Sequence record: NC_007623.1
Reading direction: 5' to 3' (one strand)
Length of the DNA stretch: 64,000 nt
The position numbers were made by a program, and so were the translations under genes. Positions 36,226 to 55,158 of this stretch are shown here, piece by piece. Position 1 is the first letter of the stretch, and each line of letters opens with the position of its first letter. Below the pieces are notes generated by a model that ran no database searches, was not told the DNA's origin, and saw only the letters and a program-made list of their open reading frames with translations.

Positions 36226-38418
36226 CTATCTTGCAAGAGGGCGTGTTGCCAAGCGAAGCAGATCTGCCGCTATCGAGTCATTTATCTTAGCCGCGATGTT
36301 GTCAGAACGAATACTGGTCTTAATATCCGTGACCACACCCGTCAGTTGACGGTTCAAACGCGACCACCGCAGAATGGTATCCAGGTAGTCCATCCCTGTG
36401 ATACGACTGGCAAAGTTGTTGAACGCACTGTCATCCGACAGAATACGACTGACCACCGCATTCGGATTAGTAAGATCCAGGATACTAATGGACCGATCAA
36501 TGGGAAGGGTGACCAGGGGTTCCAGATCGGTAATCTGTAAACTGGCCGTCATATTCAACGGTTTACGATCACGAGTCCACCCCGCATCTCCTTCCCCCAG
36601 GGTCAGATCCAATTGAGTCACCAGACCGGTACGGATGATTCCACGAGACTTACAGAAAGCTTTCACGTAGAAGGGGGAGGTATGGGTTCCACCGCCTGAG
36701 GTATTACCGGCCACTAAGGGCAGTAGGAGGGAAATCAATACCCAGATCTTAACAATCTGCTCATACGGGTGTGCGTAGTTACACACTGACTTAATGGTGT
36801 AGGTCTCCGTATGGAGATTGCAGGTGGATTCAGTCCAGTGGTCAGGGATCTTGACGTAACTGTTATTGGCAACAGCCAGGGGGATATTTCCAATAACAGA
36901 CCCTGAAAGGGCTCCCATAGCCGCGTCTTTAACAATGTTAATCAGTCCATCGACAATGGCTAAGCCAGTTTGACCTTTAGCCACATCGAAGGTGAAGTCA
37001 TTGGTAGTGCGAACAATGGAATTGAACTTTTCCGCCATAGGCGATTGCCCAGTGCTATTAGAGAAGGAATCCCGAGTAGCTCCCCCGTTCCCCTCTACGC
37101 GGAAGGTGATCCCATCCATACCACCGGCTACAGCGGTTTTAACGAGGTCGTAAATATCTCCCATCCAGGTACGATCGTTAGGGTTGTCTTCGTAGTAGAA
37201 CTGATCCCCATTGTTAATAGCGGGATTAGCGGTTACTGAGGGGGTAGCGGGAGAGGGGCGTTGAGGCCGTTCGTTGGGGTTTACAGGAGGAGCTGAAGTA
37301 CCATAAGACTCACCCGTTCCCATAGGCTGCATGGTGGAGGTGGGTTGTCCGTCAGGTCCGGTTGGGGGTTGTTCCAGTTCAAGGTTGGCAATTCCATATT
37401 GCTTATTACGTGCAGGGTCGATGTCTTGATAAGCGCCTCGGTTGAGGTAGGCACTGTCTTCTTCAACGTAGTTGGGTTCGTTATCACCCCGGTATTTACC
37501 GACTGTGCTCATTTCCTTTTCAATATACTCTTGAGAAGGTCTGCCAGCGGTTACTGAACGATCGAAGGTGACTTCTTGAAGGATTTGTTTGGCTCGTTCC
37601 AATTTCTGTTGGGGGGAGTTAATTGAAGTGTCGTTGTCCATAGAGGCCAGACGCTCCAACATTACCCGGTGTTTACGCACCCCTTTATTGACCAACCGCA
37701 TGAGGTCAATAGTCCCATCCTGGTTGACGCAATCAGGAAAGAGGGTAGACAAACTGGAAACGACTTTACTGTTGTCGTAATCGGGTTTAAGACCGTACAG
37801 GGGATCGGTCTGTTGCTGGTTCATCTTAGGTAGGATGGGATCGATGTACCCCAGTTTCACCATGAAGTCATTCAGTACACCGGTAGCCACCATGGTGTAC
37901 GCCCCAACCGCAGGCTTAACAGTCCAGAACTGATGCTTGGGGGAATCTGCTAAGAATGCCAGGAATTGGGTGCTGATACTCAACAGCTGCATAGGCCAAA
38001 AGGCAATAGAACCGATGGCTTGTCCCATGTAGAACGACAGACTGGGCGCCCGCCCTTTGTTCGCAATGATAGCCGCTGCGGGAGAGAACATGTTTGTAAT
38101 GAATGACAACAGACCAGCGAACTGAGCCACGCCTGGGGTAATGGTTAAGAGGGTGGCGTTGTTGTCGTAGATCTCTTTATACATGGAGCCGAATCCCCCT
38201 TCTGGGGTGACCATTAACCGTCCGTAACGAGGATCGGTCGCAGGGCTCCATTGAGGCACAGGGTTCACAAAGCGGTTATCCCCTGTTGCACTACTGAAAA
38301 CGTTGAAATATTTGTCCCAATCGAGGATGTCTAATACTTCACTCGGTGGGATACCGCGGGTTAACAGACGGAACGATTTCGTGATAATGTCCCGGTCGCG
38401 TGTCGTCACCTGAGCCAT
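36226..38418 (-). CDS. probable tail/baseplate-associated protein (730 aa; phiKZ gp182-like by synteny)
   Basis: AGGAA RBS before MAQVT; follows the giant tail protein; Pro-rich linker in the middle. Confidence 0.7.
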   Translation of the reverse strand: MAQVTTRDRDIITKSFRLLTRGIPPSEVLDILDWDKYFNVFSSATGDNRFVNPVPQWSPATDPRYGRLMVTPEGGFGSMYKEIYDNNATLLTITPGVAQFAGLLSFITNMFSPAAAIIANKGRAPSLSFYMGQAIGSIAFWPMQLLSISTQFLAFLADSPKHQFWTVKPAVGAYTMVATGVLNDFMVKLGYIDPILPKMNQQQTDPLYGLKPDYDNSKVVSSLSTLFPDCVNQDGTIDLMRLVNKGVRKHRVMLERLASMDNDTSINSPQQKLERAKQILQEVTFDRSVTAGRPSQEYIEKEMSTVGKYRGDNEPNYVEEDSAYLNRGAYQDIDPARNKQYGIANLELEQPPTGPDGQPTSTMQPMGTGESYGTSAPPVNPNERPQRPSPATPSVTANPAINNGDQFYYEDNPNDRTWMGDIYDLVKTAVAGGMDGITFRVEGNGGATRDSFSNSTGQSPMAEKFNSIVRTTNDFTFDVAKGQTGLAIVDGLINIVKDAAMGALSGSVIGNIPLAVANNSYVKIPDHWTESTCNLHTETYTIKSVCNYAHPYEQIVKIWVLISLLLPLVAGNTSGGGTHTSPFYVKAFCKSRGIIRTGLVTQLDLTLGEGDAGWTRDRKPLNMTASLQITDLEPLVTLPIDRSISILDLTNPNAVVSRILSDDSAFNNFASRITGMDYLDTILRWSRLNRQLTGVVTDIKTSIRSDNIAAKINDSIAADLLRLATRPLAR

Positions 38419-38452: not shown

Positions 38453-38474
38453 GGGGAGTACATCAGTACTCCCC
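38453..38474. terminator. intergenic hairpin
   Basis: GGGGAGTAC-atca-GTACTCCCC. Confidence 0.5.
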
Positions 38475-38486
38475 TATTAAGATGGA

Positions 38487-41400
38487 TCAATTCAAACGGA
38501 CGGTTTTATCGGTTCCCTGATTCACCTGTTTGTCTTGCATCTCCGCCATCCGACCCAGTACCTTGTAGATCTCAGCCAGAATACTGTTCGTATCCGAACT
38601 GTTATCACCCAGTTTACCCAACGAGGCCTTAAGCTCAGCCACCAACGCAGAGTCATCACTACGGGTGGTCGTAAGTGCCTCGGTACCCCGAGGGGACTGA
38701 GGAACAGGTTCAGACGGCGCAGGCGGAACCGGTTGAGGTGCAGAGGGAGGTGGAGAACCCTCATTAGACCTCGGAGTCGAGATCGGAACATCCGTAGCCG
38801 GGTTACCAAAGGTGGGAGTAGGCGTAGGTGGAACGTTCCGTTGCATCGGTCCTACCACACCACCGCCCAGTCCGGTGGTATCCTGTCCATTCACGGACTG
38901 CCCGCCTTGCACAGCGTTAAGGAACTTGTTCGCTGCTTCAGGGGACTTAAAGGCCGCGTGGATATGCCCGCCCGTACCGAGTGCCGTTCGACTGCGGTAT
39001 TCATTGATGACTTGGAATTCCTGAGGGCTTAACCCTGCCCGACGAAGAATATCCGTTACAATGGCAACCGCTTGGTCACTTCCTTGTGCACCATTCACCA
39101 GGGTGAAGTCTAACGCCAGGCCTTTAGGATGAGCGCCTTTAGACCCCTTATTGACGTGGTAGGCGTCATTCAGTGCAGAGAAGTACCGGAAACCCGGAAC
39201 TGTCTGTTGAATGATTTTACCCAGTTCTTCCACAGCAGGGTGGTGTTCACCCCCCGCAATGGCTTCAGGGGATTTCAGGCGCAATCCACTGCTACCCGGT
39301 GTATTGGTGTTAACGATCATCCCACCGTTATCACCTGACCCGTATTGTCCCCCTCCGCCTCCCATGGTTCCATTCAGGGACGGCAGACTACCACCCACAA
39401 CGCCCGGAGCCGGTCTACTGACTTGAGGACGCTGGGGTTCGCTGGGGGCTTCTTGACCGTACAGGTCGGACCCGGTTTGGCTCCCTAACCCACTCCCAGC
39501 CGTTTTATCAGCTGTGGTCAGTTCACCACTTTGTAGTTTCTTCAGGTAATTCAGATAGAGCGCATAGCGCTGAGGCATTTCAGGTAACGGATTACCTCCA
39601 TTCAACCCTGTTGCCGCTCTACCGAAGTCACCGGTTTGGCTAATACTTCTCAAGAGCTTAGAGTTCCTGAAGAAGTTCACCGCAATGGCTGCCATGACGT
39701 TCGGATCGTTACTGGCCAGCTCTGGTCTGTTCTCCAGATCAATACCCAGCTCTTGGCCAACCCTCCGGTAATTAGCGCGACCCGTCAGCTGAATAAACCC
39801 ACGCCCTCGGTAACGGTACCCATCACCGGCTTCCCTGTTCCCTAAGGAAGCACCTTTACCCCCACCGTACACGGTATTGGCGATGGCCACTTCACCGGCT
39901 TGTACGAGCGCTCTCGCTTGTTCCATGCTCTTCACTTCCCTGAAGAGTTGAACCAAGCGTTCCGGACTGCTGTACTTCATGTTCTCAGTGGTCCGGGAAT
40001 AGCCTGAAGACTCGTAGTTGGTAAGGGCGAGCATTTCAGCGATTTCACGAGGGTCCGTAAAGCCTTGTTTCAGCATCTCACGGATGATCAACTGCTCCGC
40101 CAACGGCTTAGGAACACTCACCCCTCGATCCGTTCCTTGGTTCGTACGTACACCGGTCATATCCAAATGACTGGTGTCCGAATCACCCGTAATAGGCGTG
40201 AAACCAAAGGCATTCTCAGGGGTTCTGAACCGACCGTCGCTGCTGTACGTATTCCCAGCGTCTCCGCCAAAGGTACCGTACATCCCTCCTAGAGCAGAAT
40301 CTCTCCGAGACCGGAATTGTTCCGGGGTAGAAACATTCGCTTGTTGGTCGGTGAACCCACCCCCTACCCGGTGAGGACTGATCTTCTCAGCCCAGGTTTG
40401 GGCGTTGGTCTTACCCGCTTCCAATTCAGGGTCTTTGAGTTTAGCTTCTACCGACGCTTCCCCCAAGAGGTTCAACATCCTGTCAACTTTATCCGACCGT
40501 CCGGGAGAGGTTTCCCAGGCGAAGGGTGCTGCTCTCACATTCCACACCGAGATGGTAAAGCCAAAGACGCCATTGACTTGGGTTTGAGTCAGTTCCTTGG
40601 CGATCTCATACCGTGCGGTAGCGGAAAGGGTTCTCCAAACCACACCCGGTAGCCCCCGACGGTATTTCCTCATCAGGGTCATGTAGTTGGTCAGCACCGG
40701 CAGGAACCGATCCCTGAACCACTTGCACCAGGCATCCGCGTACCGATCATCCACCCGGAAGGCGTCCTTGAACCGAGCGAAGAGTTCACCTATGTTGCCC
40801 TTGAACACCATGTCATCCCCTTTCGCCATAAACAGGGATTCACAATGACGTTCCAACTTGAGGACGGCTTCGACTCGCCAGGGGACATCCTTATCGTTCC
40901 CGTAGGTAGCCACCCGGATAGCGGTAAGCATATCCAAGGCTTTACCATCTGGCATCAGGTCTTGGATATAGATCTGGCCGACAACCGCATTGGCGGTATA
41001 CGCTTTCCCTAACCGATCGATTTCACCTTTAACCTCCTTCAGGCGATCGGTGGCCTCCATCTTCTCCCCGAAGTCTTTCCACTGGGTACTCCGGTCTTCC
41101 AGCTTCCGTTCCAGTTGAACCCGTTCCTTCTGAAGGGACTCCAGACTTTGGCCTTTAACCGTAGAGACGGCAAAGGGATCAATGGTGGGATCTTTAGCCC
41201 CGACATACTTCTTAAGGGCATCCAAGAGGTTACCCACCCGGATGATCGTCATTTGTTGATCAAGGAGAGGAGTCTCTTTGTCAATCTTAGCTACGATCTG
41301 GTACGGGGAAGGCACCAACCCACTGAGGGCACTGTGGGCTTGTTTGGCCACTTTGTACACGATTAAGTCAGACGAATCGTCATAGTCCTTCAACGATCGC

Positions 41401-44400
41401 AGTTTAACCGCATCCAAACAGGCCAGGTAGGTCAAGTAAACGGGTTTGAACCGTCCATTGAACCAGGTAAAGACTTCACCAATTTCATTACGGTCTTGAG
41501 GATTGCCTACGAAGAGACGAAGGACTTCCTCAATAGGCGCTTGCTTAGACAGCGACGCGCGCCCATTCCCAATCACCACATGGTCTTTTAGCAGGTTCTC
41601 AACGTTGAGGATTTTAGCCGCCAGGGGACCGTGAGGATCTGAGAGACCGTACTGAACCATCCGTAGTTCAATTTGCTTCCCTTTACCTGAACCAAACAGG
41701 GAATCCCATCCCCATTTAGAAGTCCCCAACATCACCCCAAAGGGACTGTACATCGAAGACCCCAGGGCATCCGTAGTAGGACTCTTTCCTTTGACCTTTT
41801 CCAAAATCCATTTCGCAATGGTCTGTCCACCCAGTAAGCCCGCGGTGGCACCCACTTGTTGGTAAAGACTATTACCGGCTTTACCCACTTTAAGGATTTG
41901 GTCGGTGGTACCGAGTTTCTTCGTTTCTTCGTCAGTAGCGACCTGGTACATTTCGTACGCAGACAATGCACCTGCGCCAATCAAACCGGCGCGTCCTGCA
42001 CCCAGTTTACCCAAGTGTCCGAGTCCACCCAGACCATTCAATAACCCACCGAGTCCACCAGCGACGCCCTTAGCGATAATCGTCAACAGTTTAAGTCCCA
42101 TACGACCGAACTTAAACAATGCACTGAACCCGCTCCAGAGGACCTCAGAACCCAGGAAGCTGGTCAGCCACTCGAAGCCTTTCTTAACACCCCCTACCAA
42201 ACTGCTCAGGAGACCGAAGATACCGAACTTCTTCTTCTTACCGAGTTCTTTCTCATCCTTCATACCGAAACCGAAGTTTTCAGCAATCGAGATGATGGCG
42301 TTCTTAACGGTGTTGTCTTTCTCTTCCTGGAGTTTTTGCGCACGGTCGGCCAGGGAGTTAGCTCGGGTGGCATCATTGGACGACGCTGACCGACGGAACC
42401 GATCGGTGTTGTCCCCTTCCCCCGCTTTTCCTTTAGCGGCTCTAAAGCTCTCCAGGGCGTCTTTAAGCGCTGGATTCTTTTCCATAAGGGCTTCGGTAAG
42501 GGTAAGATCGTTTCGATCTCCTAGGGACCCTGGAGGGCCTTCTGGGCCATCTTGGGAACCTGGTGCCGGGGGAGTGAAGGGATTGGGGCTACCATCCGGT
42601 GAGTTATACCCCCAATGTTTCAAGAGGAGGTAATAGATCCGATCCACGGAATTGACCACTGGAGAGTGATCCGTACTGAACGGATTCTTAACCCGACCCC
42701 CCATGCCTTTCGCATACCCACCTGCGCGGTCTTTCAATTTACCGAAGAGGTCCAACCCGAACTGTCCGGCTTGTCTAAGGCCCGCGCCCAGCTTGTTGAT
42801 ACTGGTCCCCATGGAGGTTTTAAGTCCACGGTCGTATTCTTCAGCCGTGATCAGGGTATTCCCTTCCTTGTCATACACCGGGCCATCGATCTCATCCCAT
42901 CCCTGGAGTTCAACGAACCCGTCTCCACTCCGTTTGAAGTATTGACCTTTACCAAAGCGACTCCCCAGCAAAACCGGTTCGTCTTCACCTTCAATGTAAA
43001 TATCCATCCGGTACAGACGGGTACGAGCTTTATCCCAAAACCCTTTAATGCGGTTAACAGGATCCAGCCAGTTAAAGGCTTTCATAAAGAGATCCCGAAC
43101 CTTATTCAGGCCTTTAAGGAATACTTCCTTGTTGTCTTCGGTAAAGAGTTTACCCGCTAAGCGGCTAGCGCCAATAACGGCTCCATTGGCCAGGTCTTTA
43201 ATACTCCCAGTAATCTGATCCCACCCCTGAATGATCTTCCCGGTGAGCATATCCAGATACTCACCCTTAAAGAGTTTAAAGGATTCAAGGATCGGGGTAT
43301 CAGACCCTTCTTCGTACAGGTCTTCCGTGTTCTCGGCTCGATGAGCAGCCGCTCGGGCACGCAACTTGTTATATGCCATCCCTAGCGCCAAGCCACCTCC
43401 TACCAATGCAGCACCTTTCGGGTTGTAGATCGCCATACCCGCCAATCCACCCAGTAAGCCACCCAGTACCAACGGTTGGTTATCCAGGAGTTTGTCTATT
43501 CCCTTATTAAACAGATCCCCAAACGACGTACTCTTAATCCGTTCCAGAATACTCCGTTTTTGTTGCTGGAGGGTTTCTTCAGCTTCAGGAGTGGGTTTCT
43601 CGTAGGGTTGACGTTCCAAGATCTTGGTGAGGATATCGTTCCGGTTCCCTCCCAGTTCTACCAGTTTACCCAGCAGGCTGTTCCCTTGAGTCACCTGGTC
43701 GTTCAGAGCGGTGAACATCGAAGACGGATCCGTAAGACCCGAACGACTTACACCTCCCTGTTCAATATGTGCCCCGAGTTTATCCAAAGTTTCCCGTACA
43801 CCCTGAAGGGTTTCATTCAACTGAGCGTTCTCAGCTGCAATCATACCTCCGGAGTCTCGACGCCCTCTTCCCCGTCTGCCAAAGGAACGGGTCTTACGCA
43901 CCGCTTCTTCCAGAGGGTTGTCATACACCATAGCACGGTCAGGGTTATCAATGAAGGACTGGAGGACGTTCCGGAAGGTGTCCATATTGACTTCATCGTG
44001 GCCATTTTCAGACTTGATGATGCCAGCTTCTTTCATGACGTTGTAATACCCAGACGAACGCAGCATATCGACGCGCTCGGCAATGTCCGGCATAAACCGA
44101 CCCAGGAGGTTGGATTGTTCCGTTAACTTGGCGGCGCGTTCTCGGGCTTGTTCTGTAGGAAGACGAGCAATAGCGCTCGCCCGGTCCAGGGTACTGCCCT
44201 CCTTAAAGGCCGTAAAGGCTTCCGGGGTAATATCAAAATTCCGTTGGAACAATTCCCGGATTTCATCCGCTACCTGACGGTTTACCCCTTTGGTCTCCAA
44301 GTTCATGTACAGGTACGGACTGAACCCTTTCCGTTTATCCGCATTCTGAACCAGTTGCATCGCCAATACACGGCGGGCTTCGTTGGACAATTCCTTATTG

Positions 44401-46118
44401 GGGTCAATGGAATCCACCAATCGAAGGGACGTATCCGCTTGGGACTTGAATTGGTCTTTATCCATTACCCGGTTAAAGGTATCCGCTACCTTTTGGTTAT
44501 GGCTGACCAACTTACCCCGTACGTAGTCATAACTCGACGCTTTAAGGGTATCATCCCCCGTACGGATCTTTTCAATCGACAAGTGAATGTGGCTGAGCAG
44601 TTCGGGGATCACTTCATTCAGGGTACGGGAGGACTGTTTGTTCCAGATCTCCGGTTCGTGGGCATCCATTAACCCCCGACGTTTTAGGCTGTAACGACTC
44701 CCGGTGGGTTGGTACAACTCATCCAACAACCCCGCCATGCCTTTATTCGCCCCTTTCTTCAGGGTATTAATAACCGTCCATTCCACTTTACCCAAGGGCT
44801 TTTGACCTGAACGGAGCGTACTGAGGTATTGTTCGTAGTCCCCGTCCTCGTCAAACGAGGATCCCCAGTTGTGGTATTCCGAAAGGGTATTGACCATTCC
44901 TTCCGCATTACTGAGGTTATACGACGCTATGTTACCCAAATCCGTGAGTTGCGCGTACGCGTTATCCGCCCATTTCCCCAGTTCCGGGAATTGTTTCTTG
45001 AACTTAGCAACGTATTCCTTTCCCTTACGGGAATTGATCATCCGGGGGAGGTTGCTAATGAACATTTGGGCCGCAACGTTACCCACCATGGTCCCTACGT
45101 TGAGCGGCATGCCTTCCGACATCTCCGCCGCCATGCGCATGGCGCCAATCAGGTCACCTGCACCTCGGATTCCGTCCCCTCGCGCATCCTTACCGAACCG
45201 CTCGTTAATAAACTCACGTATTCCTCCAAAGGAGCCTTTAACCGTATTGAAGACCGATTCCCGAATGCTATTACGCATCGCTTGACTGTGGGTGGTCTTT
45301 TCGTAATCACTCTTAGCGGAGTTCAGGGCAATGGTCTTCAGTTCAGCAATCATCCGGTGATTACTGGCTTCCATGAACTTGTAGAACTTCGCGCTGGTCA
45401 AATAGGAACGGGCCAACAGGTTCACCTTGAGGGTATCATTCCTCAATTGAACTTTACGTTGGTAATTCACCATTTGTTCCAGCAGTTGGTTACTCCGCCC
45501 AATACTCAGGTTCAGGGTATTCAACCCCCCAATGGTGCGGCCACCTACTTCGGTCATCATGGCGGTAATACTTTCACCCACCCCAATGACCGTTTCCCGC
45601 TCTAACAGGGAGTTAGCGTCTTCACTCCCCAGTAGGTCTTTCACATCATTTTCGCCCACATTTTCCATGGACGGGGTGTCACTCGCCGACGACGTATATG
45701 GCTTCCAACTGCTGAAGTCATTTTGACTGAACCGAGTCAGCCCACTGGCTACACCCCCGGTGATCTTATTAGGAGCTATTTTACCTAACTTATCACCACC
45801 CCGTTTAGCCAAGTATTGGAGGTCCACGACTGCATCGTAGCTTTCACGTTTAAGTTCGTCTACGATCTCCCTCCGACGACGGTTAATGTCCGACGCCGTA
45901 GTAAAGGCAGTCCCCCAGGTCTTAGGGAGGACCATCTTCAGGGTGTTCAACCGAGCATCGGTGTCCCCTACTGTCTGATTCACTACACCTGACAAAAACC
46001 CGGTTGCTACCGAACGAATGAACCCCGGTTTCTTCCCATCGAAATCGGTATCGAAATCAATATCCCCAGTAAAGGGATCCTCTCCCCAATCGAAATCATC
46101 GAATGTATTATCCGCCAT
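38487..46118 (-). CDS. giant virion tail (tape-measure-like) protein with C-terminal GH19 glycosidase and M15-like peptidase domains (2543 aa)
   Basis: Helical body with Gly-rich hydrophobic segments; GH19 motif DGYRYRGRGFIQLTGRANY; HPKGLALD (HX6D) plus HIH. Confidence 0.88.
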   Translation of the reverse strand: MADNTFDDFDWGEDPFTGDIDFDTDFDGKKPGFIRSVATGFLSGVVNQTVGDTDARLNTLKMVLPKTWGTAFTTASDINRRRREIVDELKRESYDAVVDLQYLAKRGGDKLGKIAPNKITGGVASGLTRFSQNDFSSWKPYTSSASDTPSMENVGENDVKDLLGSEDANSLLERETVIGVGESITAMMTEVGGRTIGGLNTLNLSIGRSNQLLEQMVNYQRKVQLRNDTLKVNLLARSYLTSAKFYKFMEASNHRMIAELKTIALNSAKSDYEKTTHSQAMRNSIRESVFNTVKGSFGGIREFINERFGKDARGDGIRGAGDLIGAMRMAAEMSEGMPLNVGTMVGNVAAQMFISNLPRMINSRKGKEYVAKFKKQFPELGKWADNAYAQLTDLGNIASYNLSNAEGMVNTLSEYHNWGSSFDEDGDYEQYLSTLRSGQKPLGKVEWTVINTLKKGANKGMAGLLDELYQPTGSRYSLKRRGLMDAHEPEIWNKQSSRTLNEVIPELLSHIHLSIEKIRTGDDTLKASSYDYVRGKLVSHNQKVADTFNRVMDKDQFKSQADTSLRLVDSIDPNKELSNEARRVLAMQLVQNADKRKGFSPYLYMNLETKGVNRQVADEIRELFQRNFDITPEAFTAFKEGSTLDRASAIARLPTEQARERAAKLTEQSNLLGRFMPDIAERVDMLRSSGYYNVMKEAGIIKSENGHDEVNMDTFRNVLQSFIDNPDRAMVYDNPLEEAVRKTRSFGRRGRGRRDSGGMIAAENAQLNETLQGVRETLDKLGAHIEQGGVSRSGLTDPSSMFTALNDQVTQGNSLLGKLVELGGNRNDILTKILERQPYEKPTPEAEETLQQQKRSILERIKSTSFGDLFNKGIDKLLDNQPLVLGGLLGGLAGMAIYNPKGAALVGGGLALGMAYNKLRARAAAHRAENTEDLYEEGSDTPILESFKLFKGEYLDMLTGKIIQGWDQITGSIKDLANGAVIGASRLAGKLFTEDNKEVFLKGLNKVRDLFMKAFNWLDPVNRIKGFWDKARTRLYRMDIYIEGEDEPVLLGSRFGKGQYFKRSGDGFVELQGWDEIDGPVYDKEGNTLITAEEYDRGLKTSMGTSINKLGAGLRQAGQFGLDLFGKLKDRAGGYAKGMGGRVKNPFSTDHSPVVNSVDRIYYLLLKHWGYNSPDGSPNPFTPPAPGSQDGPEGPPGSLGDRNDLTLTEALMEKNPALKDALESFRAAKGKAGEGDNTDRFRRSASSNDATRANSLADRAQKLQEEKDNTVKNAIISIAENFGFGMKDEKELGKKKKFGIFGLLSSLVGGVKKGFEWLTSFLGSEVLWSGFSALFKFGRMGLKLLTIIAKGVAGGLGGLLNGLGGLGHLGKLGAGRAGLIGAGALSAYEMYQVATDEETKKLGTTDQILKVGKAGNSLYQQVGATAGLLGGQTIAKWILEKVKGKSPTTDALGSSMYSPFGVMLGTSKWGWDSLFGSGKGKQIELRMVQYGLSDPHGPLAAKILNVENLLKDHVVIGNGRASLSKQAPIEEVLRLFVGNPQDRNEIGEVFTWFNGRFKPVYLTYLACLDAVKLRSLKDYDDSSDLIVYKVAKQAHSALSGLVPSPYQIVAKIDKETPLLDQQMTIIRVGNLLDALKKYVGAKDPTIDPFAVSTVKGQSLESLQKERVQLERKLEDRSTQWKDFGEKMEATDRLKEVKGEIDRLGKAYTANAVVGQIYIQDLMPDGKALDMLTAIRVATYGNDKDVPWRVEAVLKLERHCESLFMAKGDDMVFKGNIGELFARFKDAFRVDDRYADAWCKWFRDRFLPVLTNYMTLMRKYRRGLPGVVWRTLSATARYEIAKELTQTQVNGVFGFTISVWNVRAAPFAWETSPGRSDKVDRMLNLLGEASVEAKLKDPELEAGKTNAQTWAEKISPHRVGGGFTDQQANVSTPEQFRSRRDSALGGMYGTFGGDAGNTYSSDGRFRTPENAFGFTPITGDSDTSHLDMTGVRTNQGTDRGVSVPKPLAEQLIIREMLKQGFTDPREIAEMLALTNYESSGYSRTTENMKYSSPERLVQLFREVKSMEQARALVQAGEVAIANTVYGGGKGASLGNREAGDGYRYRGRGFIQLTGRANYRRVGQELGIDLENRPELASNDPNVMAAIAVNFFRNSKLLRSISQTGDFGRAATGLNGGNPLPEMPQRYALYLNYLKKLQSGELTTADKTAGSGLGSQTGSDLYGQEAPSEPQRPQVSRPAPGVVGGSLPSLNGTMGGGGGQYGSGDNGGMIVNTNTPGSSGLRLKSPEAIAGGEHHPAVEELGKIIQQTVPGFRYFSALNDAYHVNKGSKGAHPKGLALDFTLVNGAQGSDQAVAIVTDILRRAGLSPQEFQVINEYRSRTALGTGGHIHAAFKSPEAANKFLNAVQGGQSVNGQDTTGLGGGVVGPMQRNVPPTPTPTFGNPATDVPISTPRSNEGSPPPSAPQPVPPAPSEPVPQSPRGTEALTTTRSDDSALVAELKASLGKLGDNSSDTNSILAEIYKVLGRMAEMQDKQVNQGTDKTVRLN

Positions 46119-46148: not shown

Positions 46149-47591
46149 ATGAAACCGACTAACATTACCCTCTTAGACCCCCGGACGATTGTTCCGGGTG
46201 TCTTTAAACCTATTACGTCTACAGACTCATTTGAAGGGATGACCCAGAACCTCAATGATGACGGTCTCTTCTCCCTTGACATCTTCGGTAAACTGGGTAG
46301 TAAACAACGTGATAACACGGAAGCGTATATCGACGTTAAACTTCCCATCTTCAATCCCACTTACCTAAAAGCCCTTATACAGATCAAAAGTCTGTATCAT
46401 TCAATTTTGAAAGGGTCGGAATACGCGGTATGGGATCCCGAACTGAAGGATTTCATAAAATCGAACATCCTGGAAGGGGAAAAGGGTTTCGCCTTCTTCC
46501 TGAAACACTTCGATGAAACCGTCTTCTCCCTGACCCCCTCTCATAAACGCAAACAACGGGTAGAACTGGCGAACCAATTCCGTAACACGGCGTTAACGGA
46601 TAAGGTCCTGGTCATCCCCGCGGGTCTCAGGGATATCCAATTCAATCCAGATGGTTCCCACACCGAACCTGAAATCACTGAATTCTACCGCGCCTTAATG
46701 TTCCGGGTGAGAGTGATCCTCGGGAATAAGGAAGATGCCCTGAACCCCCTTTACGATACCGTTCGGTGGGGGGTACAGAATGCTTTCTTGGAATTGGATA
46801 ATTACCTCTTTGGTTTACTCCAGGGGAAAGGGGGTGTTCTCCAGCGTCGTATGTCCACCCGAGGGGTTCACAACAGCACCCGGAACGTCATTACCGCCCG
46901 TAAAGTCTCCAGGACACGTTTAGACTTCGACGACGGTGTAGGTCCTAACTCTGCGGACATGGGACTCTACCAAGCCCTGCTGAACTTCCCTTATGTCTGC
47001 ATCAATGCGTTAACCAACGGCTACCTTTCCAACATCTTCACCCCCAGCTCTCAAACCGCTAAGCTGGTGAATACCAAGACCCTGGAATACGAATACGCTG
47101 AAGTCTCCCCTGAGGTGGTAGAGAAATGGACCACCGCCACCGGGTTAATGAAACTCTTCAACGGGTTTGCCGATCCCTCCTTACGGAGTAAACCCATTGT
47201 CATTGAGTGGAAATACTTAGCCCTCATTTATGATGATGGGACTGATGTGTGTGTTCTCCATGACATCAACGATCTCCCTCAAGGGAAAGACCGTAAATGG
47301 GTGAAACCTATCACCTACATGGAACTCTTCTACTTGAGTTGCCACAGTGTCATCGAAGAACAGATTACAGGACAAACCCGGTATCCCATTACGGGGATTG
47401 GCTCTATCTTCCCGGCTAAGGTTAACCTACGTACCACCACCAATGCGAGCCAGCGGGTCATTCGTAATCCGATTGATTGGAGTGTGCGGGAAACCTGTAA
47501 ACGGTTCCCTAAACGTGAAGCCCACCCCGATTACTTCGATGCCATGTCCGTAGACCCCTCTAGAGAAGCTTTGCTCGACAGTGACCATGAT
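46149..47591 (+). CDS. rpoC: virion RNA polymerase beta-prime N-terminal subunit, exon 1 (phiKZ gp180-like)
   Basis: DGLFSLDIFG, VLVIPAGLRD, LQGKGGVLQRR, RYP; ends in DSDHD, the first half of the catalytic motif. Confidence 0.93.
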
Positions 47592-47621
47592 TAGATAGTG
47601 ATGCATGATATAAACTCACTA

Positions 47622-47676: not shown

Positions 47677-48948
47677 ATGCTAACGTGTTTTGGAAAGAAA
47701 TACGTGTTGTCTACAACCAACACGGTTTACAATGTCACCGATAAGACAGATGTTCCAGTCCATCGGATGACAGACGGGAATACGTTCTTCATCGCACGGG
47801 GCGATGAAAACGAACTGGTTAAGATCAAACTGGGGTTAATGATCCTCCATGGAGAAGGAAAGTTCCATCTTCCTCTCTCTGAATGGGAACAGGTGAAAGT
47901 AGGTTTTCTGGATGACGATACAGGAAACTTTGCAGCGGATAACCTTTACTTGGTCTATCCTGAAGAGGGCATCCCTTACCCTGAACTCTCTGGGTACTAC
48001 TACATCCCTGGGTTTGAACTCAACGCAATCAACCGAGACGGTGTGGTATACCGAACAGTTAGAAAGAATCTTTACCCACCGTATCTGGGTGGTAACACCG
48101 TTCCTAACAGTTTCTACCCCTTTGTTCGACTGGATGTGGTCAGTGGGGATGAACGCAAGTATGTCCACCGGCTACTGGCGGAGACCTTCGGTAAGCCGCC
48201 TAAGGGCTACCCCAAGCTACTGGTCGACCATAATGACGGTAACAAGATGAACTTCAAGCTCTTTAACTTGATTTGGGTTACCGCTAAGGACAACTCCTTC
48301 AAAGCGTACAACAATCAAGAAGCGAGAGCGGACAATAATCCCTTGGAGGTTTTTGACAGGGAATTAGGTCAAGTCTTTAAGTACGTCAGTCAAAATGAGT
48401 TTGCGAGAACCATGGAGGTGGATTCTTGGTGCATTAGTCTGGTACTCAAACGTCCTCGTTCAGTGTACAAGAACAGGTACGTTCTTCGTCGGAAGGGAGA
48501 TACACGTGACTTCCAAGAGATCTGGGACTATAAGCCCCCTGTGGGTAAGAAGATCCTTGCCCGGAATGTCTTCACCGGTGAAATCACGGTGTATAATTCA
48601 TTGGCGGAGGCCTCTAGAGCAACACAGGTAGGGACAACAGGCATCCTGACGTCCCTGAGTAACACCAACCCGAGATCCGCCTTTAAAGACCTTCAATTCA
48701 AGCGGGAGTCTGACGAGACCCCTTGGCCTGATTTGAATGAATACGAACTGGAATGCATCCGGCGCAAGATGCACCCTGCTACAGCTGTGTATGAAATGTT
48801 TGATTCGGTAACCCAGGAGACGTCGATTGTGTATGGCGTTGATGCAGTTACCCGAATCACCGGAGCCAATCCCCGTACCGTTATCGTTTGCGCACGAGAA
48901 GGTAAGTTGCTCCATTCCCGTTATCGTTTCAAGAAACTTACACGTTAA
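47677..48948 (+). CDS. intron-encoded HNH homing endonuclease with NUMOD1/IENR1-like repeats
   Basis: VHRLLAETF...VDHNDGNKMNFKLFNLIWVTAKDN; three C-terminal repeats such as VYNSLAEASRATQV. Confidence 0.92.
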   Translation: MLTCFGKKYVLSTTNTVYNVTDKTDVPVHRMTDGNTFFIARGDENELVKIKLGLMILHGEGKFHLPLSEWEQVKVGFLDDDTGNFAADNLYLVYPEEGIPYPELSGYYYIPGFELNAINRDGVVYRTVRKNLYPPYLGGNTVPNSFYPFVRLDVVSGDERKYVHRLLAETFGKPPKGYPKLLVDHNDGNKMNFKLFNLIWVTAKDNSFKAYNNQEARADNNPLEVFDRELGQVFKYVSQNEFARTMEVDSWCISLVLKRPRSVYKNRYVLRRKGDTRDFQEIWDYKPPVGKKILARNVFTGEITVYNSLAEASRATQVGTTGILTSLSNTNPRSAFKDLQFKRESDETPWPDLNEYELECIRRKMHPATAVYEMFDSVTQETSIVYGVDAVTRITGANPRTVIVCAREGKLLHSRYRFKKLTR

Positions 48949-49363: not shown

Positions 49364-49546
49364 GGCGATCAATTGTCGAGCCATTCTGTTGTAGCGGAAG
49401 ACAGCAAACAACAGGCCTACGAACTCTTTGGGAAACGGGAGTATTACATCAGTGGTACGGGTCGGTTTTTGTACGATCCGATCAATGAACCGATTCTCTT
49501 TATGTTTAAAGCAGCGACGAGCGGCTTAGAGGATATTGAGGTATGA
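49364..49546 (+). CDS. rpoC: virion RNAP beta-prime N-terminal subunit, exon 2 (60 aa, absent from the ORF track)
   Basis: Reads GDQLSSHSVVAEDSKQQAYELFGKREYYISGTGRFLYDPINEPILFMFKAATSGLEDIEV*; completes DHDGD; stop overlaps the next ATG (ATGA). Confidence 0.9.
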   Translation, partial: GDQLSSHSVVAEDSKQQAYELFGKREYYISGTGRFLYDPINEPILFMFKAATSGLEDIEV

Positions 49547-52500
49547 GCAATCCAATTACGTATTCCGAGTTCTTTAAGCACTTTGTGCTGCGTAAGAAAC
49601 AAGACGTTGTAAACCCTAAAGTCCTGGGTATTGGTGAAGTGATCCTTCCTAAGGGGAGTTTACTGCACTTCGTACCGAAGACGATTAACGAAAAGGGACC
49701 GGGTAGTAGTGAAGCGTTTATCAGTAACTTCCCTAAAGAGGTCTTTATTGAGTTTGTAAGGGACGGGTATAAGCCGGTGATGGGGCATGGGCGGACAGTC
49801 GCCTATGACTACCCTAAGGCGGTTAAGGCGTACCGGGCGAGTCACTACATGTACAGCTGGGTGCGAGAGATCAGCACGGTGTACAACAAAGAGAACGTGT
49901 TGGTCGTTAAGAACTACGGGATGATTCCTCAGGGGTTCGTTTACCGTCCGAGTATTTTCGTGAATTATGAAAAATACTACAACATGATGCACCTGCTCAT
50001 TGAGAACATCAATGCAGAAGCCGAGAAAGGGGTGCGTCGGCAGTATATGCGGATTGACCTGCCGTTGAACCTGCCGTCCCTGGTTGAGCTTGAGAAAGAC
50101 TACGGACGGTTTATTGATGGGTTTAATGATGGGCATCCTGTCCTGATGCGCAATATGTTGGAGAGTACGAAGGCTGAGAACTGCTATTGGCTGTTGGACC
50201 TACTGGGGTTCCTGTTTGGCCAGTATTCGTTCAGTTTGTTCGGTAAACTCACCGACCAGGCGTATAAGGATTTGCATATCCTCTTTACGTCACAAAGTAA
50301 AGTCATTGTAGTACAACTGGGGCTGTTGAAGGGTTGGTTAGATGAAACAAATCCTAAAGACGAGAAAACCTACCCCTCTGCTCGGAAAGAGTTTGAAAGT
50401 CTGAAGACATTGACCCGCCATAATGCGGTTAAACGTTTCTATTTGGCTTTGATGAATCTTTCTCGTGGAGGCGTTCCTGAGAATGTACTCATTAAAGAGG
50501 AAACGAAAAATGTCATCCCAATTGCCGGAGAGAAAGGTACCGTTGACCAAGTGGCTGCGGGAACGTCACGAGAAGAAGAAGAAGAAACATCCAATCTTCC
50601 AGAAACCCGAGACCATACTGGCTCGGGCACGGTTCCCCGTGCTGATCGTCCTGCTGGTTCTATCCTTGATGTTTTCAGCCGAAGTGAAGGACCTGGCGAG
50701 GCACATGACGAAGAGCAAGACACAGCGGGAGAACGAGGTGCTGATTCAAATCTTGAAGAGTGGACATCGCCGGTAGATGATGAACTGCTGGAGGTGGAGA
50801 AAGTCCAAACCGAGATCAATACCAACAAGAATGTGTTTAAGACGCCTGAGAGTGGTGTAAAGCGGGCGTTGGAGGAGCGGGCTAAGGAAGGTACGCTGAC
50901 GGTGGCTGAACATGATTTCTTCATGCGTAAAGCGACCCGTTATCAGCACATTGAGATGGAGAACGGTCAAACGTTCGAAGAGTTCATTCAGATCAAACCC
51001 GAAGAGGTTAAAGACCTGGGTGGAGAGATTGAAGGTGAGTTTCTCCCCGTACTGGATGAGAGCATGTTGCGGAGTCGTGCCAAATCCCTCAAGATCGAAT
51101 ATCCTCAGAAGTTTTTACACCGGGATATTGGTCGAATGGTGTTGGGTCTTCAGAACGCTGGCTTTGCGATGAACGACTACCGGCGTGAGAAGGTCGTCAG
51201 CGTAGAAGGCAGTTACGAGGTCCACAGCATTCAGTTACACGAAGTCAATGGTGATCAGGTCACTGTACATACTCGGTTGCCTACGGTGCTGAAAGACGGC
51301 ACCTACGTCATTGATGGTGTTAAGCAACACATGCAACTGCAACGTCGGGAGAAACCTTTCCGGAAGATCAGTCCTCGGGAAGTGGTGCTGTCGAGCTATT
51401 ACGACCGTAAGCTCATGGTGAGTCGTAGTCCGAAGATGGTGGATAACCTCTCTACGTTCATGGTGAAGCAAATCTCCCTCCAGAGTAAGCGGAAAGGGTA
51501 TACGGTCACTAAAGGCAGTACGTGGGATCGCTCCCTTAAAGCCCCCCGGATTTACAGCATTCTGGCTCGTCAGTACAAGTACATTACTGTCGACGGGTTG
51601 GTATTGGACTTCCGGTTGAAGGATCTCCTGGAACTCCACCCTGAGTTCAAAGCCTATACCCGCCCTGATCGGTTCTTGATTGGGGTAAAAGACGGATTAC
51701 CTTTGATCATTGATGATTACGGTAACCTGTACAAAGGGGAAGAGGAACTCGGTACTGTTGAAGACTTGCTCGGTATTGATGTTCGTAAAGCGCCTTTGGA
51801 ACACGTGGTGATTAACATCAGCGGGTATTCGTTTCCGTTGGGAGTGGTCCTGTGCTTCTACTTCGGTATTGATGAACTGTTGCGGGTGATTAAAGCCACG
51901 ACGCGTTCGGTACCCGTAGGGACTCGCCCTAAATTGACGGAGGATGAATACGCGATTCAGTTCAATGACGAATACTTGATCTTTAACCGTCGGGAGAAGC
52001 TCACCACGTTGATCTTCGGTGGAATGCCGAAGTTGAACAACATCAGTAACTTCAGTCGGAGTGATTTGAATAATAACAGTATTTGGAGTGCGTTAATGGG
52101 AGACCCTCGGGTTCGCCCATCTCAGTTCCAGGAAATGAAGAACCTCTTCGATCTCTTTATCGATCCCATTACGAAAGACCTCTTGAAAGAGATGAAGCTG
52201 TCTGAAGACTTCCATTACTTGCTGATTGATGCGGCTAAGGCATTGGAAACGGATTACAGTCGACACGAGGTGGAGATTGAAGAGCAACGCATTGTAGGGT
52301 ATGAACGCTTCGCGGGTCATCTCTACACGGAATTTGTAAAGTCCATTCGTCAATACCGGAATAAGGGGAAAGGACGTAAACACAAACTGGACTTTAATCC
52401 GGACGCGGTTATTATTGCCATTGGTACTGACCGGTCTACGAACTTGGTGGAGGAAGTGAATCCAGTTCACCAAGTGAAGGACCAAGAGGAAGTGACGTTT

Positions 52501-52743
52501 GGGGGTACGGGTGGTCGTAGTGAAATCACCATGGTCAAACGCGCACGGACTCAGCTGGAGAGTTACAAAGGGGTCATCAGTGAAGCCAACAAGGACAGTG
52601 GTAAAGTGGGGTATGTGACCTACACCACCTCTGATCCGGGTATCGCTGATTTCCGAGGCAATGTTGATCCCAAGAACAAACGTACTCCTACCGGTGACGG
52701 TTCGGTAACTATGAACCTGATGTACGGTGGAACGCATGACGAT
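49543..52743 (+). CDS. rpoB: virion RNA polymerase beta N-terminal subunit, exon 1 (phiKZ gp178-like)
   Basis: VIDGVKQHMQLQ, EVNPVHQV...VTFGGTGGR, SEANKDSGKVG; ends in GTHDD. Confidence 0.92.
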
Positions 52744-53158
52744 TGAGCTGTTGTGAAAACAATAGATCACTCAGTCCAACCAGGGAGTAATCCCTTGTTG
52801 CCATTACCTTTAATTGCGGGAACCTACTGAGAGCCTTATCTACCAAACCCGAGCAGGAAACCAACGGGTGGCCAACCATAACGGGTTGGGGACGGTAATA
52901 ACGATAAGGATTGGGGAACCCTACGCAGCGAAGCACCTACGTATTGTCGAGAGGACAAGATAGGGTGAACGTTCAACGACTACGGATGAAATTTCCGGTA
53001 GAGGTGTCAGGATGATACTTCCAAAAGTAAGGTTGCCCTGTATGCTTGAGGTGTGAATAACACTGAGTACAGGGATGAAATATAGTCTCGTCATCTAAGG
53101 GAAAACCTTAGAGCGTGGTGCTACGCGCACCGGCGGATAGGATATCCGTGAAGAAACG
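52744..53158 (+). mobile_element. ORF-less group I intron (415 nt)
   Basis: P1 ACGAU/GUUGU; P AATTGCGGGAA 52812, R GTTCAACGACTAC 52971, S GAAATATAGTCT 53077; terminal G 53158. Confidence 0.93.
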
Positions 53159-54279: not shown

Positions 54280-55158
54280 ATGAACTTCCGGACGAAGAAC
54301 GGTTACCGAGACCTGCAAGCGTTGGTTAAGGAACTGGGTCTTTATACCGGGCAGATTGACGGTGTGTGGGGGAAGGGAACTTCCTCCTCCACTGAAACCC
54401 TGCTCCGGGGGTATGCCGAGGTGGTGGGTAAGAATACCGGAGGTATCGGTCTCCCCACCACCTCGGATGCCAGTGGTTATAACGTCATTACAGCGCTCCA
54501 GCGTAATCTGGCCTTCTTGGGTCTCTATTCCCTGACTGTGGATGGTATTTGGGGGAATGGGACCTTGAGTGGCTTGGATAAGGCATTCGAGGTGTACAAG
54601 GAGCGTTACCGCACGCCGACCTACGACATTGCGTGGAGCGGTAAAGTCAGTCCTGCCTTTACGGCGAAAGTGAAGGATTGGTGCGGCGTTCATGTGCCGA
54701 ATCACCGAGCTCCTCATTGGCTGATGGCCTGTATGGCTTTTGAGACCGGCCAGACATTCAGCCCGTCTATTAAGAATGCGGCGGGTTCTGAAGCGTATGG
54801 GTTGATTCAATTCATGAGCCCAGCCGCCAATGATTTGAATGTTCCGTTGAGTGTGATTCGATCTATGGATCAGCTGACTCAATTGGACCTGGTCTTTAAG
54901 TACTTCGAAATGTGGATGAAACGGGGTAAGCGTTATACCCAGCTGGAAGATTTCTATTTGACGATCTTCCATCCGGCCTCAGTAGGTAAGAAGGCTGATG
55001 AAGTCCTCTTCCTTCAGGGGAGTAAAGCGTATCTCCAGAACAAGGGGTTCGATGTAGATAAGGATGGTAAGATCACCCTGGGTGAAATTTCTTCTACATT
55101 GTACACCACGTATTACAAAGGTCTGTTGCCTGAAAATCGTCACGTTATTTCGTATTGA
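54280..55158 (+). CDS. modular endolysin (peptidoglycan-binding plus lytic transglycosylase-like domain; resembles EL188)
   Basis: Two DGxWGxGT PG-binding repeats; catalytic AFETG and AYGLIQFM. Confidence 0.93.
   Translation: MNFRTKNGYRDLQALVKELGLYTGQIDGVWGKGTSSSTETLLRGYAEVVGKNTGGIGLPTTSDASGYNVITALQRNLAFLGLYSLTVDGIWGNGTLSGLDKAFEVYKERYRTPTYDIAWSGKVSPAFTAKVKDWCGVHVPNHRAPHWLMACMAFETGQTFSPSIKNAAGSEAYGLIQFMSPAANDLNVPLSVIRSMDQLTQLDLVFKYFEMWMKRGKRYTQLEDFYLTIFHPASVGKKADEVLFLQGSKAYLQNKGFDVDKDGKITLGEISSTLYTTYYKGLLPENRHVISY

Follow-up and report, generated by a model that had tools for sequence, protein, structure and literature searches.

A putative LAS-type peptidase domain accompanies the GH19 domain in gp183, a giant tail-associated protein of Pseudomonas phage EL

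Virion lysins with two catalytic domains are frequent or typical among the phages of Gram-positive hosts (2018 review, PMC6024856), and bifunctional virion lysins or LAS-type tail modules are already known from phi29 gp13, the lactococcal Tal proteins, and TM4 mt3 (PMC6024856, PMC9662197). The two-enzyme lysins of Gram-positive-host phages work on thick-walled hosts and are small beside the protein described here, which is the 2543-residue gp183 (PPEV_gp183) of the Pseudomonas aeruginosa jumbo phage EL. This protein is encoded on the minus strand of a 64,000-nucleotide stretch of sequence record NC_007623.1, which is the window to which all positions below refer (the coordinate in the EL record is the window coordinate plus 147,215). 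Its counterpart in phage phiKZ, gp181, is a structural peptidoglycan hydrolase located at the cell-puncturing device of the tail (PMC5380687). Our best explanation of the data is that gp183 is the EL counterpart of phiKZ gp181, a giant and largely non-enzymatic tail-associated protein that carries two cell-wall modules on flexible linkers near its C-terminal end, namely a GH19 glycosidase and a small alpha/beta domain, a putative zinc peptidase of the LAS superfamily (lysostaphin, D-Ala-D-Ala peptidase, Sonic hedgehog). We put the probability of this explanation as a whole at roughly 65%.

The enzymes with which the second module is best compared have been characterized in different settings. 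VldE (Spr1875) of Streptococcus pneumoniae contains an MT3 domain (PDB 9FLH-9FLN) that is a zinc-dependent L,D-endopeptidase cutting the L-Ala-D-Glu bond (PMC11667670). The domain has a LAS fold, holds its catalytic zinc on H301, D308, and H375, the last of which belongs to an H373-x-H375 pair, and makes use of R294 (PMC11667670). The founding example of the MT3 family, in which VldE is included (PMC11667670), is the mt3 module in the tape-measure protein of phage TM4, which degrades peptidoglycan and aids the infection of stationary-phase cells yet is dispensable for viability (PMC1796659). Modules of this kind in tape-measure proteins assist the delivery of DNA where the cell wall is tougher (PMC1796659). 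A further tail-associated enzyme, phi29 gp13, is an M23 D,D-endopeptidase (PDB 3CSQ) with a zinc motif composed of H(x)nD and H-x-H (PMC9662197).

The gene for gp183 spans positions 38487-46118, stop codon included (minus strand, as for all gp183 features given below), and both the list of open reading frames (ORFs) and the translation show a single uninterrupted ORF of 2543 aa. Based on the ORF and on homology, gp183 was assigned as an intact giant tail-associated protein. The last 637 residues are 100% identical to those of phage EL (AJ697969 / NC_007623, genus Elvirus), and seven further EL-like isolates are 99.2-99.7% identical over the same C-terminal stretch. Three pieces of gp183 together cover phrog_3201, a family of the tail category with 2408 positions, from end to end (positions 7-862, 865-1917, and 1921-2401, with E-values of 2.7e-223, 3.5e-241, and 2.6e-74, respectively). 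The current labels differ from one database to the next. GenBank gives a "putative phage-related lysozyme domain" and RefSeq a "tail fiber protein", and elsewhere the same gene is recorded as an endolysin, chitinase, tape measure protein, or structural lysozyme. The name "tail fiber protein", which RefSeq and PHROG apply to gp183, phiKZ gp181, and RisingSun gp228, is probably a misnomer.

Comparison with the relatives places the variation between these proteins at their C-terminal ends. phiKZ gp181 (2237 aa) belongs to the same PHROG as gp183, has the same neighbours, shows collinear weak homology (22-28% identity over residues ∼430-1860), and likewise carries its enzymatic module near the C-terminus. 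Unlike gp183, it has a Pfam SLT domain (E 2.9e-7), has neither a GH19 nor a LAS-like domain, and gives no match to the second-domain profile. Erwinia phage RisingSun gp228 (2561 aa) is 42-44% identical to gp183 and contains both GH19 (37.3 bits) and the second domain, the latter at residues 2301-2428. In the counterpart from Klebsiella phage Miami (2268 aa), GH19 is followed by ∼143 residues, which is too short for a second domain. A preliminary description of the locus, made from the DNA sequence alone, had pointed to a lytic transglycosylase domain in phiKZ gp181 and had proposed that C-terminal modules are swapped. The first point is upheld, and the second is supported by the modules themselves, which are SLT in phiKZ, GH19 without a partner in Miami, and GH19 followed by the second domain in both EL and RisingSun. 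It was apparently within the lineage of these last two phages that the second domain was added.

The GH19 domain, a glycosidase of the lysozyme/chitinase type, occupies residues ∼2005-2200 (39519-40106). It passes the gathering score of Pfam PF00182 (34.8 bits, threshold 25.5, E 1.9e-8), matches the endolysin family phrog_181 (E 2e-41), and aligns with the solved GH19-type phage endolysins 4ok7, 9ms6, 9eoi, 7r6s, and 8p8e with E-values from 1e-17 to 1e-15. The alignment with 4ok7 (E 1.4e-17) extends over 174 residues and sets E2036 and E2045 (39984-40013) against Glu residues of that enzyme. From general knowledge of GH19 endolysins, we take these two residues to be the catalytic acid/base pair. 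Both are retained in all 45 of the giant homologs that we aligned, within which the domain has a mean identity of 70% to EL. The GH19 part is already known in substance because GenBank annotates a lysozyme domain, and the location of ∼39530-40110 proposed for it earlier is borne out. The motifs quoted in the preliminary description all exist, with some coordinates slightly off. YESSG lies at 40002-40016, and YRGRGFIQLTGRANY is present at 39768-39812, about 15 nt from the interval of 39781-39830 that had been given. In the second domain, HPKGLALD lies at 39108-39131, where 39105-39131 had been reported, and the position of HIH, 38958-38966, was exact. The same description had the protein ending in two hydrolase domains. 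Both domains are there, but about 133 more residues (38490-38888) follow the second.

The second domain, a LAS-like (M15/Hedgehog-type) putative zinc peptidase, was delimited to residues ∼2276-2410 (38889-39293) by a hidden Markov model (HMM), a structural model, and relatives. The HMM envelope covers residues 2273-2407. The domain starts ∼75 residues past GH19 and is present in a single copy within the window. Its motif by itself is weak evidence and would be suggestive at most, as a loose H-x6-D...(30-80 aa)...H-x-H pattern arises in 0.6% of shuffled gp183 sequences and a stricter H-x-x-G-x-A-x-D...H-x-H pattern in 0.015%. Conservation is what counts. The motif residues are retained in 45/45 giant homologs whose identity to EL in the aligned C-terminal region is just 32-61%, and the mean identity to EL among these proteins is 58% in the second domain versus 25% in the flanking linkers. 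A HMMER search of 1.84 billion representative proteins returned at least 702 relatives at E≤1e-3, each a cluster at 50% identity, and 235 of them at E≤1e-10. The proteins that contain the domain range from 60 to 3200 residues. The domain is carried by 61 metagenomic clusters of 2500-2780-aa proteins, 60 with a precomputed GH19 match; several of these are on contigs of 214-240 kb and therefore represent EL-like jumbo phages. A profile search of a 5.8-billion-protein set became saturated on the low-complexity flanks and yielded 9 close relatives only, none Pfam-labelled. The GC content of the segment, overall and at third codon positions (GC3), gives no sign of recent foreign origin (GC3 0.53 against 0.57-0.58 in the rest of the gene).

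The pattern of conserved residues was evaluated in 74 diverse relatives, in a domain-only alignment of 34 sequences cut from viral loci, and in the 45 giant homologs. Five residues, D2318, H2330, G2333, D2337, and H2385, are invariant in 74/74 relatives. H2330 and D2337 of HPKGLALD are the first two putative metal ligands. The stretch also contains G2333 and A2335, the latter kept in 70/74, and its H, G, and D are invariant in 34/34 of the domain alignment as well; it aligns with the zinc-ligand stretches of VldE MT3 and Sonic hedgehog. The H-x-H motif, H2385-I-H2387, would provide the third ligand and a water-activating His, based on conservation, the model, and the role of these residues in LAS enzymes (PMC11667670, PMC9662197). 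Position 2387 is His in 71 of the 74 relatives and Asp in three. Upstream of the ligand motif is a conserved pair, D2318 and H2321 (39156-39167), in which the His is kept in 72/74 and 32/34 sequences. Finally, an acidic residue on the strand preceding the H-x-H strand, E2373 (39000-39002), is found in 73/74, 34/34, and 45/45 homologs and might act as the general base, a putative role. Residues 2276-2290 (39249-39293), ahead of the first helix of the domain, are conserved family-wide and modelled with lower confidence than the core; they may be part of a substrate groove or lid.

An AlphaFold2 model built from the alignment of the 74 relatives has a predicted local distance difference test score (pLDDT) of 88.6 and a predicted template modelling score (pTM) of 0.82, with four strands and about five helices. 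In the model, H2330 is situated just ahead of the strand that bears D2337, and the H-x-H pair is at the start of the last strand; the order of the elements fits a LAS-type alpha/beta sandwich. When the domain-only profile of 34 sequences was compared with the PDB at E≤10, 26 of 28 matches were LAS-fold proteins, including VldE MT3 as the best match, 20 Hedgehog N-terminal domains, DacB/LdcB, and the T5 L-alanyl-D-glutamate peptidase. (An equivalent search with the full-length 74-sequence alignment, in which the tape-measure-like flanks drew coiled-coil matches, was discarded in favor of the domain-only one.) Submitted singly to Pfam, the 34 relatives matched Peptidase_M15_4 (13), M15_3 (10), HH_signal (8), and VanY (4), with best E-values from 2.2e-4 to 6.6e-3; other families were matched by at most two members each. 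Structural comparison with Foldseek gave a similar picture. Fifteen of the top 50 PDB matches were M15/LAS chains (LdcB, VldE, DacB, VanXYc, the RB49 and ECD7 endolysins, and ChiX), with a best probability of 0.90 for VldE. Against BFVD there were five significant matches, all unnamed members of the second-domain family, one of them a GH19-labelled protein of 442 aa; next came many entries named "Peptidase M15A", microvirus "Peptidase", "Peptidase M15", and D-Ala-D-Ala carboxypeptidase (probability 0.9-0.99). Taken together, these comparisons, each below significance by itself and mutually consistent, suggest that the second domain is a separate branch of the LAS / Peptidase_MD superfamily outside the curated models. 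The proposal of an M15/Hedgehog-type second domain in the preliminary description is thereby supported, in that the domain appears to be a conserved and separately folding unit whose weak signals are all LAS.

VldE is the best match by sequence profile and among the best by fold (probability 0.84-0.90, target-normalised TM 0.55-0.59). The two domains share the H-x6-D stretch with its inner Gly and Ala as well as the H-x-H pair, and H2330 and D2337 of EL stand opposite H301 and D308. They differ in the spacing from the Asp to H-x-H, which is 48 residues in EL versus 65 in VldE, and no counterpart was seen in the EL domain to the zinc-zipper loop, which gives VldE its four-zinc state. Moreover, VldE is secreted by a bacterium and has LysM, whereas the EL domain resides in a phage protein. 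TM4 mt3 resembles the EL domain in being a small module inside a protein that travels down the tail, but the envelope of its host differs from that of the EL host. Nothing conserved in the alignment of the EL family corresponds to the Ile-Trp pair described as central to mt3, and Trp is absent from the invariant and nearly invariant columns of the 34-sequence alignment. The M15 families (VanY/LdcB/DacB, M15A, and the T5 and RB49 endolysins) give the same superfamily signals as the EL domain, with 4nt9, 4d0y, 4ox5, and 2mxz as the M15-type matches by profile and 4oxd, 4oak, 23ri, 8q2g, and 5opz by Foldseek. Unlike the EL domain, these are free endolysins or housekeeping enzymes, and they show low TM-scores and differing peripheral elements. 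phi29 gp13 also has a lysozyme-type domain and follows the glycosidase-plus-peptidase logic proposed for gp183. M23 enzymes such as gp13 are mostly beta, in contrast to the alpha/beta model of the EL domain, whose structural matches are of the M15 type. As no M23 structure appeared among those matches either, we rejected a candidate M23 assignment.

The second domain is found well beyond the giant proteins. When 50,697 phage records were searched by tblastn, using the EL domain and a prophage member as queries, only 14 cultured phages were carriers, consisting of nine Elvirus, three RisingSun/Joad, Psychrobacter phage D'Alembert, and Vibrio phage VH-8; no mycobacteriophage was returned. In the myophage D'Alembert, the domain is part of a 574-aa protein encoded between the tape-measure and baseplate genes. 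Bacterial genomes with the domain include those of Bradyrhizobium, Nitrobacter, Methylobacterium, Vitreoscilla, Haliscomenobacter, and a Saccharibacteria metagenome-assembled genome. On a 35-kb siphovirus-type contig, the domain lies mid-way in a 977-aa ORF that occupies the tape-measure position, right after lambda-like tail tube and tail assembly chaperone genes. Two T7-like structural modules have it in the protein next after a T7_gp14-like gene, which is the ejection-protein position. All identified carriers are proteins at, or passing through, the tail tip. Thirteen of the 74 relatives also have a Pfam glycosidase or cell-wall hydrolase (Phage_lysozyme2, SLT, SLT_3, Glucosaminidase, or Hydrolase_2), several more match tape-measure models, and none has a Pfam GH19 match. 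Where the flanks are readable, the glycosidase is N-terminal to the second domain, the same order as in EL.

Two further observations concern these carriers. The T7-like modules encode a very large protein after the domain carrier, of 2055 aa in one (contig L009, 12679-18846) and 1406 aa in the other (contig L008, 13947-18167). One of the two large proteins carries Pfam LPD38, and L008 encodes a separate Phage_lysozyme2 protein slightly further downstream; the T7-like phages seem to spread wall-degrading functions over several ejection proteins. In addition, the BFVD entry A0A6J5SXI3, a 442-aa protein of an uncultured phage, combines a GH19 label with a match to the second-domain model (E 2e-5). 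The pair of GH19 and LAS-like domains therefore exists outside giant proteins too and is possibly a mobile cassette.

Several results weigh against the reading of gp183 as a tail-borne glycosidase and peptidase. The EL second domain has no Pfam match even at E≤10 and no NCBIfam match, and it stays below the gathering scores of the M15 models PF08291, PF13539, and PF02557; the earlier remark that the domain is easy to miss was correct. A PHROG scan likewise gave nothing except the phage's own PHROG family. The best PDB profile match, VldE MT3, has an E-value of 0.07, which is below significance. Foldseek, which had been suggested as a check, placed M15/LAS structures among its top PDB matches but none at E≤0.001 (E at least 0.01, TM-scores 0.35-0.59). 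The Arg of VldE that is the presumed transition-state stabiliser in M15/MT3, R294, is opposite H2321 and thus a His in the EL family; in the same alignment Hedgehog also has a His at this position. Furthermore, the tail location of gp183 is carried over by analogy from phiKZ gp181, and both Miami, with GH19 only, and phiKZ, with SLT only, evidently manage without the second module.

The replacement of the presumed catalytic Arg bears on whether the domain is an enzyme. The domain could have a LAS fold, and perhaps zinc, yet be non-hydrolytic, serving as a peptidoglycan or stem-peptide anchor that positions GH19, much as certain LAS-fold domains bind and do not cleave. Weak profile matches fall on Hedgehog N-domains as often as on peptidases, and virion-associated lysins usually have no separate binding domains, so there would be room for one (PMC6024856). 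We nevertheless regard such an anchor as unlikely. D2318, H2321, E2373, and both His residues of H-x-H are kept in ∼97-100% of the 74 relatives (71/74 for the His at 2387), which is the pattern expected for a catalytic centre. In addition, 61 of these relatives have no Pfam glycosidase, and in many the domain is the sole recognisable cell-wall module. Loss of the Arg need not be decisive either, given that in the M23 sister group, which has the same H-x-H motif, the oxyanion residue varies between Tyr, Arg, and Gln (PMC9662197). If the domain is an active LAS peptidase, it might still help only indirectly, by trimming stem peptides as a carboxypeptidase like LdcB, DacB, or VanY or by acting on another D-amino-acid or protein substrate. 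The top Foldseek PDB match and several profile matches are the L,D-carboxypeptidases LdcB/DacB, and the family matched most often in Pfam, Peptidase_M15_4, is described as a D-alanyl-D-alanine carboxypeptidase. Set against this, the endopeptidase VldE is the best match by sequence and among the best by fold, ChiX and the L-Ala-D-Glu endopeptidases of T5 and RB49 are likewise matched, and the tape-measure, ejection, and baseplate contexts fit wall opening better. These similarities are too weak to assign a peptidase specificity, and we consider trimming quite unlikely.

Processing is common among the giant virion proteins of phiKZ-like phages, and the long exposed linkers on either side of the second domain would make gp183 itself, or its tail partners, conceivable substrates of a peptidase acting in assembly and not on the host wall. 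The characterised superfamily members that we encountered all act on peptidoglycan-type peptides, however, and the domain regularly accompanies glycosidase domains, which makes a role in phage-protein processing improbable. Least credible of all, to the point of being negligible, is that there is no second domain and that the motif is a chance resemblance in a low-complexity tail. The loose pattern does turn up in shuffled sequences at the frequency given above, and the EL copy matches no curated family, but chance is refuted by the 702 homologous clusters, the confident AlphaFold2 model, the higher conservation compared to the linkers, and the invariant residues.

Returning to gp183 as a two-enzyme lysin, we consider it probable that the protein cuts both the glycan and the stem peptide at the start of infection, with zinc binding, catalysis, substrate, timing, and topology being as we infer them from the relatives and the model. 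Following contraction of the sheath, the C-terminal end of gp183 would reach the periplasm, where the GH19 module would cut the glycan strands between N-acetylmuramic acid and N-acetylglucosamine. The second module would hold one zinc by H2330, D2337, and one His of H2385-x-H2387. The other His, together with D2318, H2321, and E2373, would contribute to water activation and transition-state stabilisation. The LAS-like module could then hydrolyse a stem-peptide or cross-link bond of Pseudomonas peptidoglycan. The bond that is cut is not readable from sequence; the nearest relative is an L-Ala-D-Glu endopeptidase, and carboxypeptidases are nearly as close. Acting together, the two enzymes would make a local opening in the murein through which the tail tube and the DNA could pass, after which Gly-rich stretches of gp183 may engage the inner membrane. 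Such engagement has been proposed for tape-measure and ejection proteins generally.

The Gly-rich hydrophobic stretches were located by Kyte-Doolittle scans at residues 877-915 (43374-43490) and 1298-1367 (42018-42227), and they resemble those in tape-measure and ejection proteins. The former reaches a maximum of 1.27 (window of 21 residues), contains one charged residue, and has Gly, Leu, and Pro columns that are ≥90% conserved among the giant homologs, and the latter reaches maxima of 1.46-1.53. At the N-terminus, residues 1-45 (∼45984-46118) are acidic and Phe-rich, with Asp, Phe, and Gly columns that are ≥90% conserved in the 45 giant homologs; they may be a docking or packaging signal. 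Linker 1 (residues 2201-2275, 39294-39518) is rich in Gly, Pro, Ser, and Gln, has 25% mean identity and 13% gaps among the giant homologs, and shows low pLDDT where modelled. The translation past the second domain consists of a Pro-rich linker 2 (residues 2411-2478) and a C-terminal tail (residues 2479-2543), together at 38490-38888, with mean identities of 25% and 14%, respectively. Family scans of linker 2 and the tail returned nothing but a chance-level DEC-1_N match. A conserved C-terminal anchor was also considered and was dropped, as BLAST of the last 140 residues from EL, RisingSun, Miami, and phiKZ gave low-complexity matches only.

The gene neighbourhood is maintained across the group. 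gp183 of EL is placed between RNA polymerase genes and gp182, and in EL, phiKZ, RisingSun, and Miami alike an RNA polymerase beta gene lies upstream on the opposite strand and a gene for a protein of ∼700 aa lies downstream; the Miami counterpart of gp183 is annotated as a tape-measure protein. The downstream partner in EL, gp182 (730 aa, 36226-38418, minus strand), directly follows gp183 and gave no match in a Pfam scan. The gp183-gp182 order is common to EL, phiKZ (gp182), RisingSun (gp227, "putative structural protein"), and Miami. Between the gp183 stop and the gp182 start at 38418 there is a 9-bp GC-rich hairpin followed by a T-rich run (38453-38474, minus strand), a possible terminator or attenuator for this gene pair. 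On the other side, gp185 (47677-48948, plus strand), annotated as an HNH endonuclease, sits between the RNA polymerase beta genes at 46149-47594 and 49543-52746. The two polymerase genes lie side by side in RisingSun and Miami, where no HNH gene separates them, and gp185 has the appearance of a homing endonuclease that inserted into the cluster of virion RNA polymerase genes. Further along, gp188 (54280-55158, plus strand) is a "hypothetical protein" in RefSeq and contains a PG_binding_1 domain. Judging from the title of a reference, gp188 corresponds to the EL endolysin of earlier studies, and phage EL therefore has a separate endolysin besides the virion enzyme.

In the open literature we found no mention of a second domain in EL gp183 or its relatives, the RisingSun/Joad description included; subscription papers, such as those on the EL genome (2005) and gp181 (2008), were outside this search, so an earlier mention is possible. 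What appears to be new is the module in gp183 and its relatives, the large family without a curated model, and the His-for-Arg variant. We tentatively propose, at slightly less than an even chance, that the second domain represents an uncurated family of at least 702 clusters at 50% identity, a LAS branch with a Hedgehog-like His in place of Arg, that is specialised for proteins exiting through the tail (tape-measure, T7-like ejection, baseplate-centre, and EL-like jumbo giants) and makes the tail lysin of EL and RisingSun a glycosidase plus peptidase. The domain would be a divergent branch of a superfamily already described, within a type of bifunctional virion lysin that is likewise known, and no new kind of biology is opened by it. 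For phage EL, a well-studied jumbo phage of Pseudomonas aeruginosa, the annotation is corrected and completed. Domain libraries miss a widespread peptidase-like family, and many metagenomic tape-measure and ejection proteins are therefore under-annotated. Within the phiKZ-like group, the C-terminal cassette appears to have been exchanged, being SLT in phiKZ, GH19 in Miami, and GH19 with the LAS-like domain in EL and RisingSun. The modules are of interest for how phages cross the murein and for the search for cell-wall-degrading enzymes, and the reading proposed here would mean that a virion lysin with two enzymes can also occur in a phage whose host is Gram-negative.

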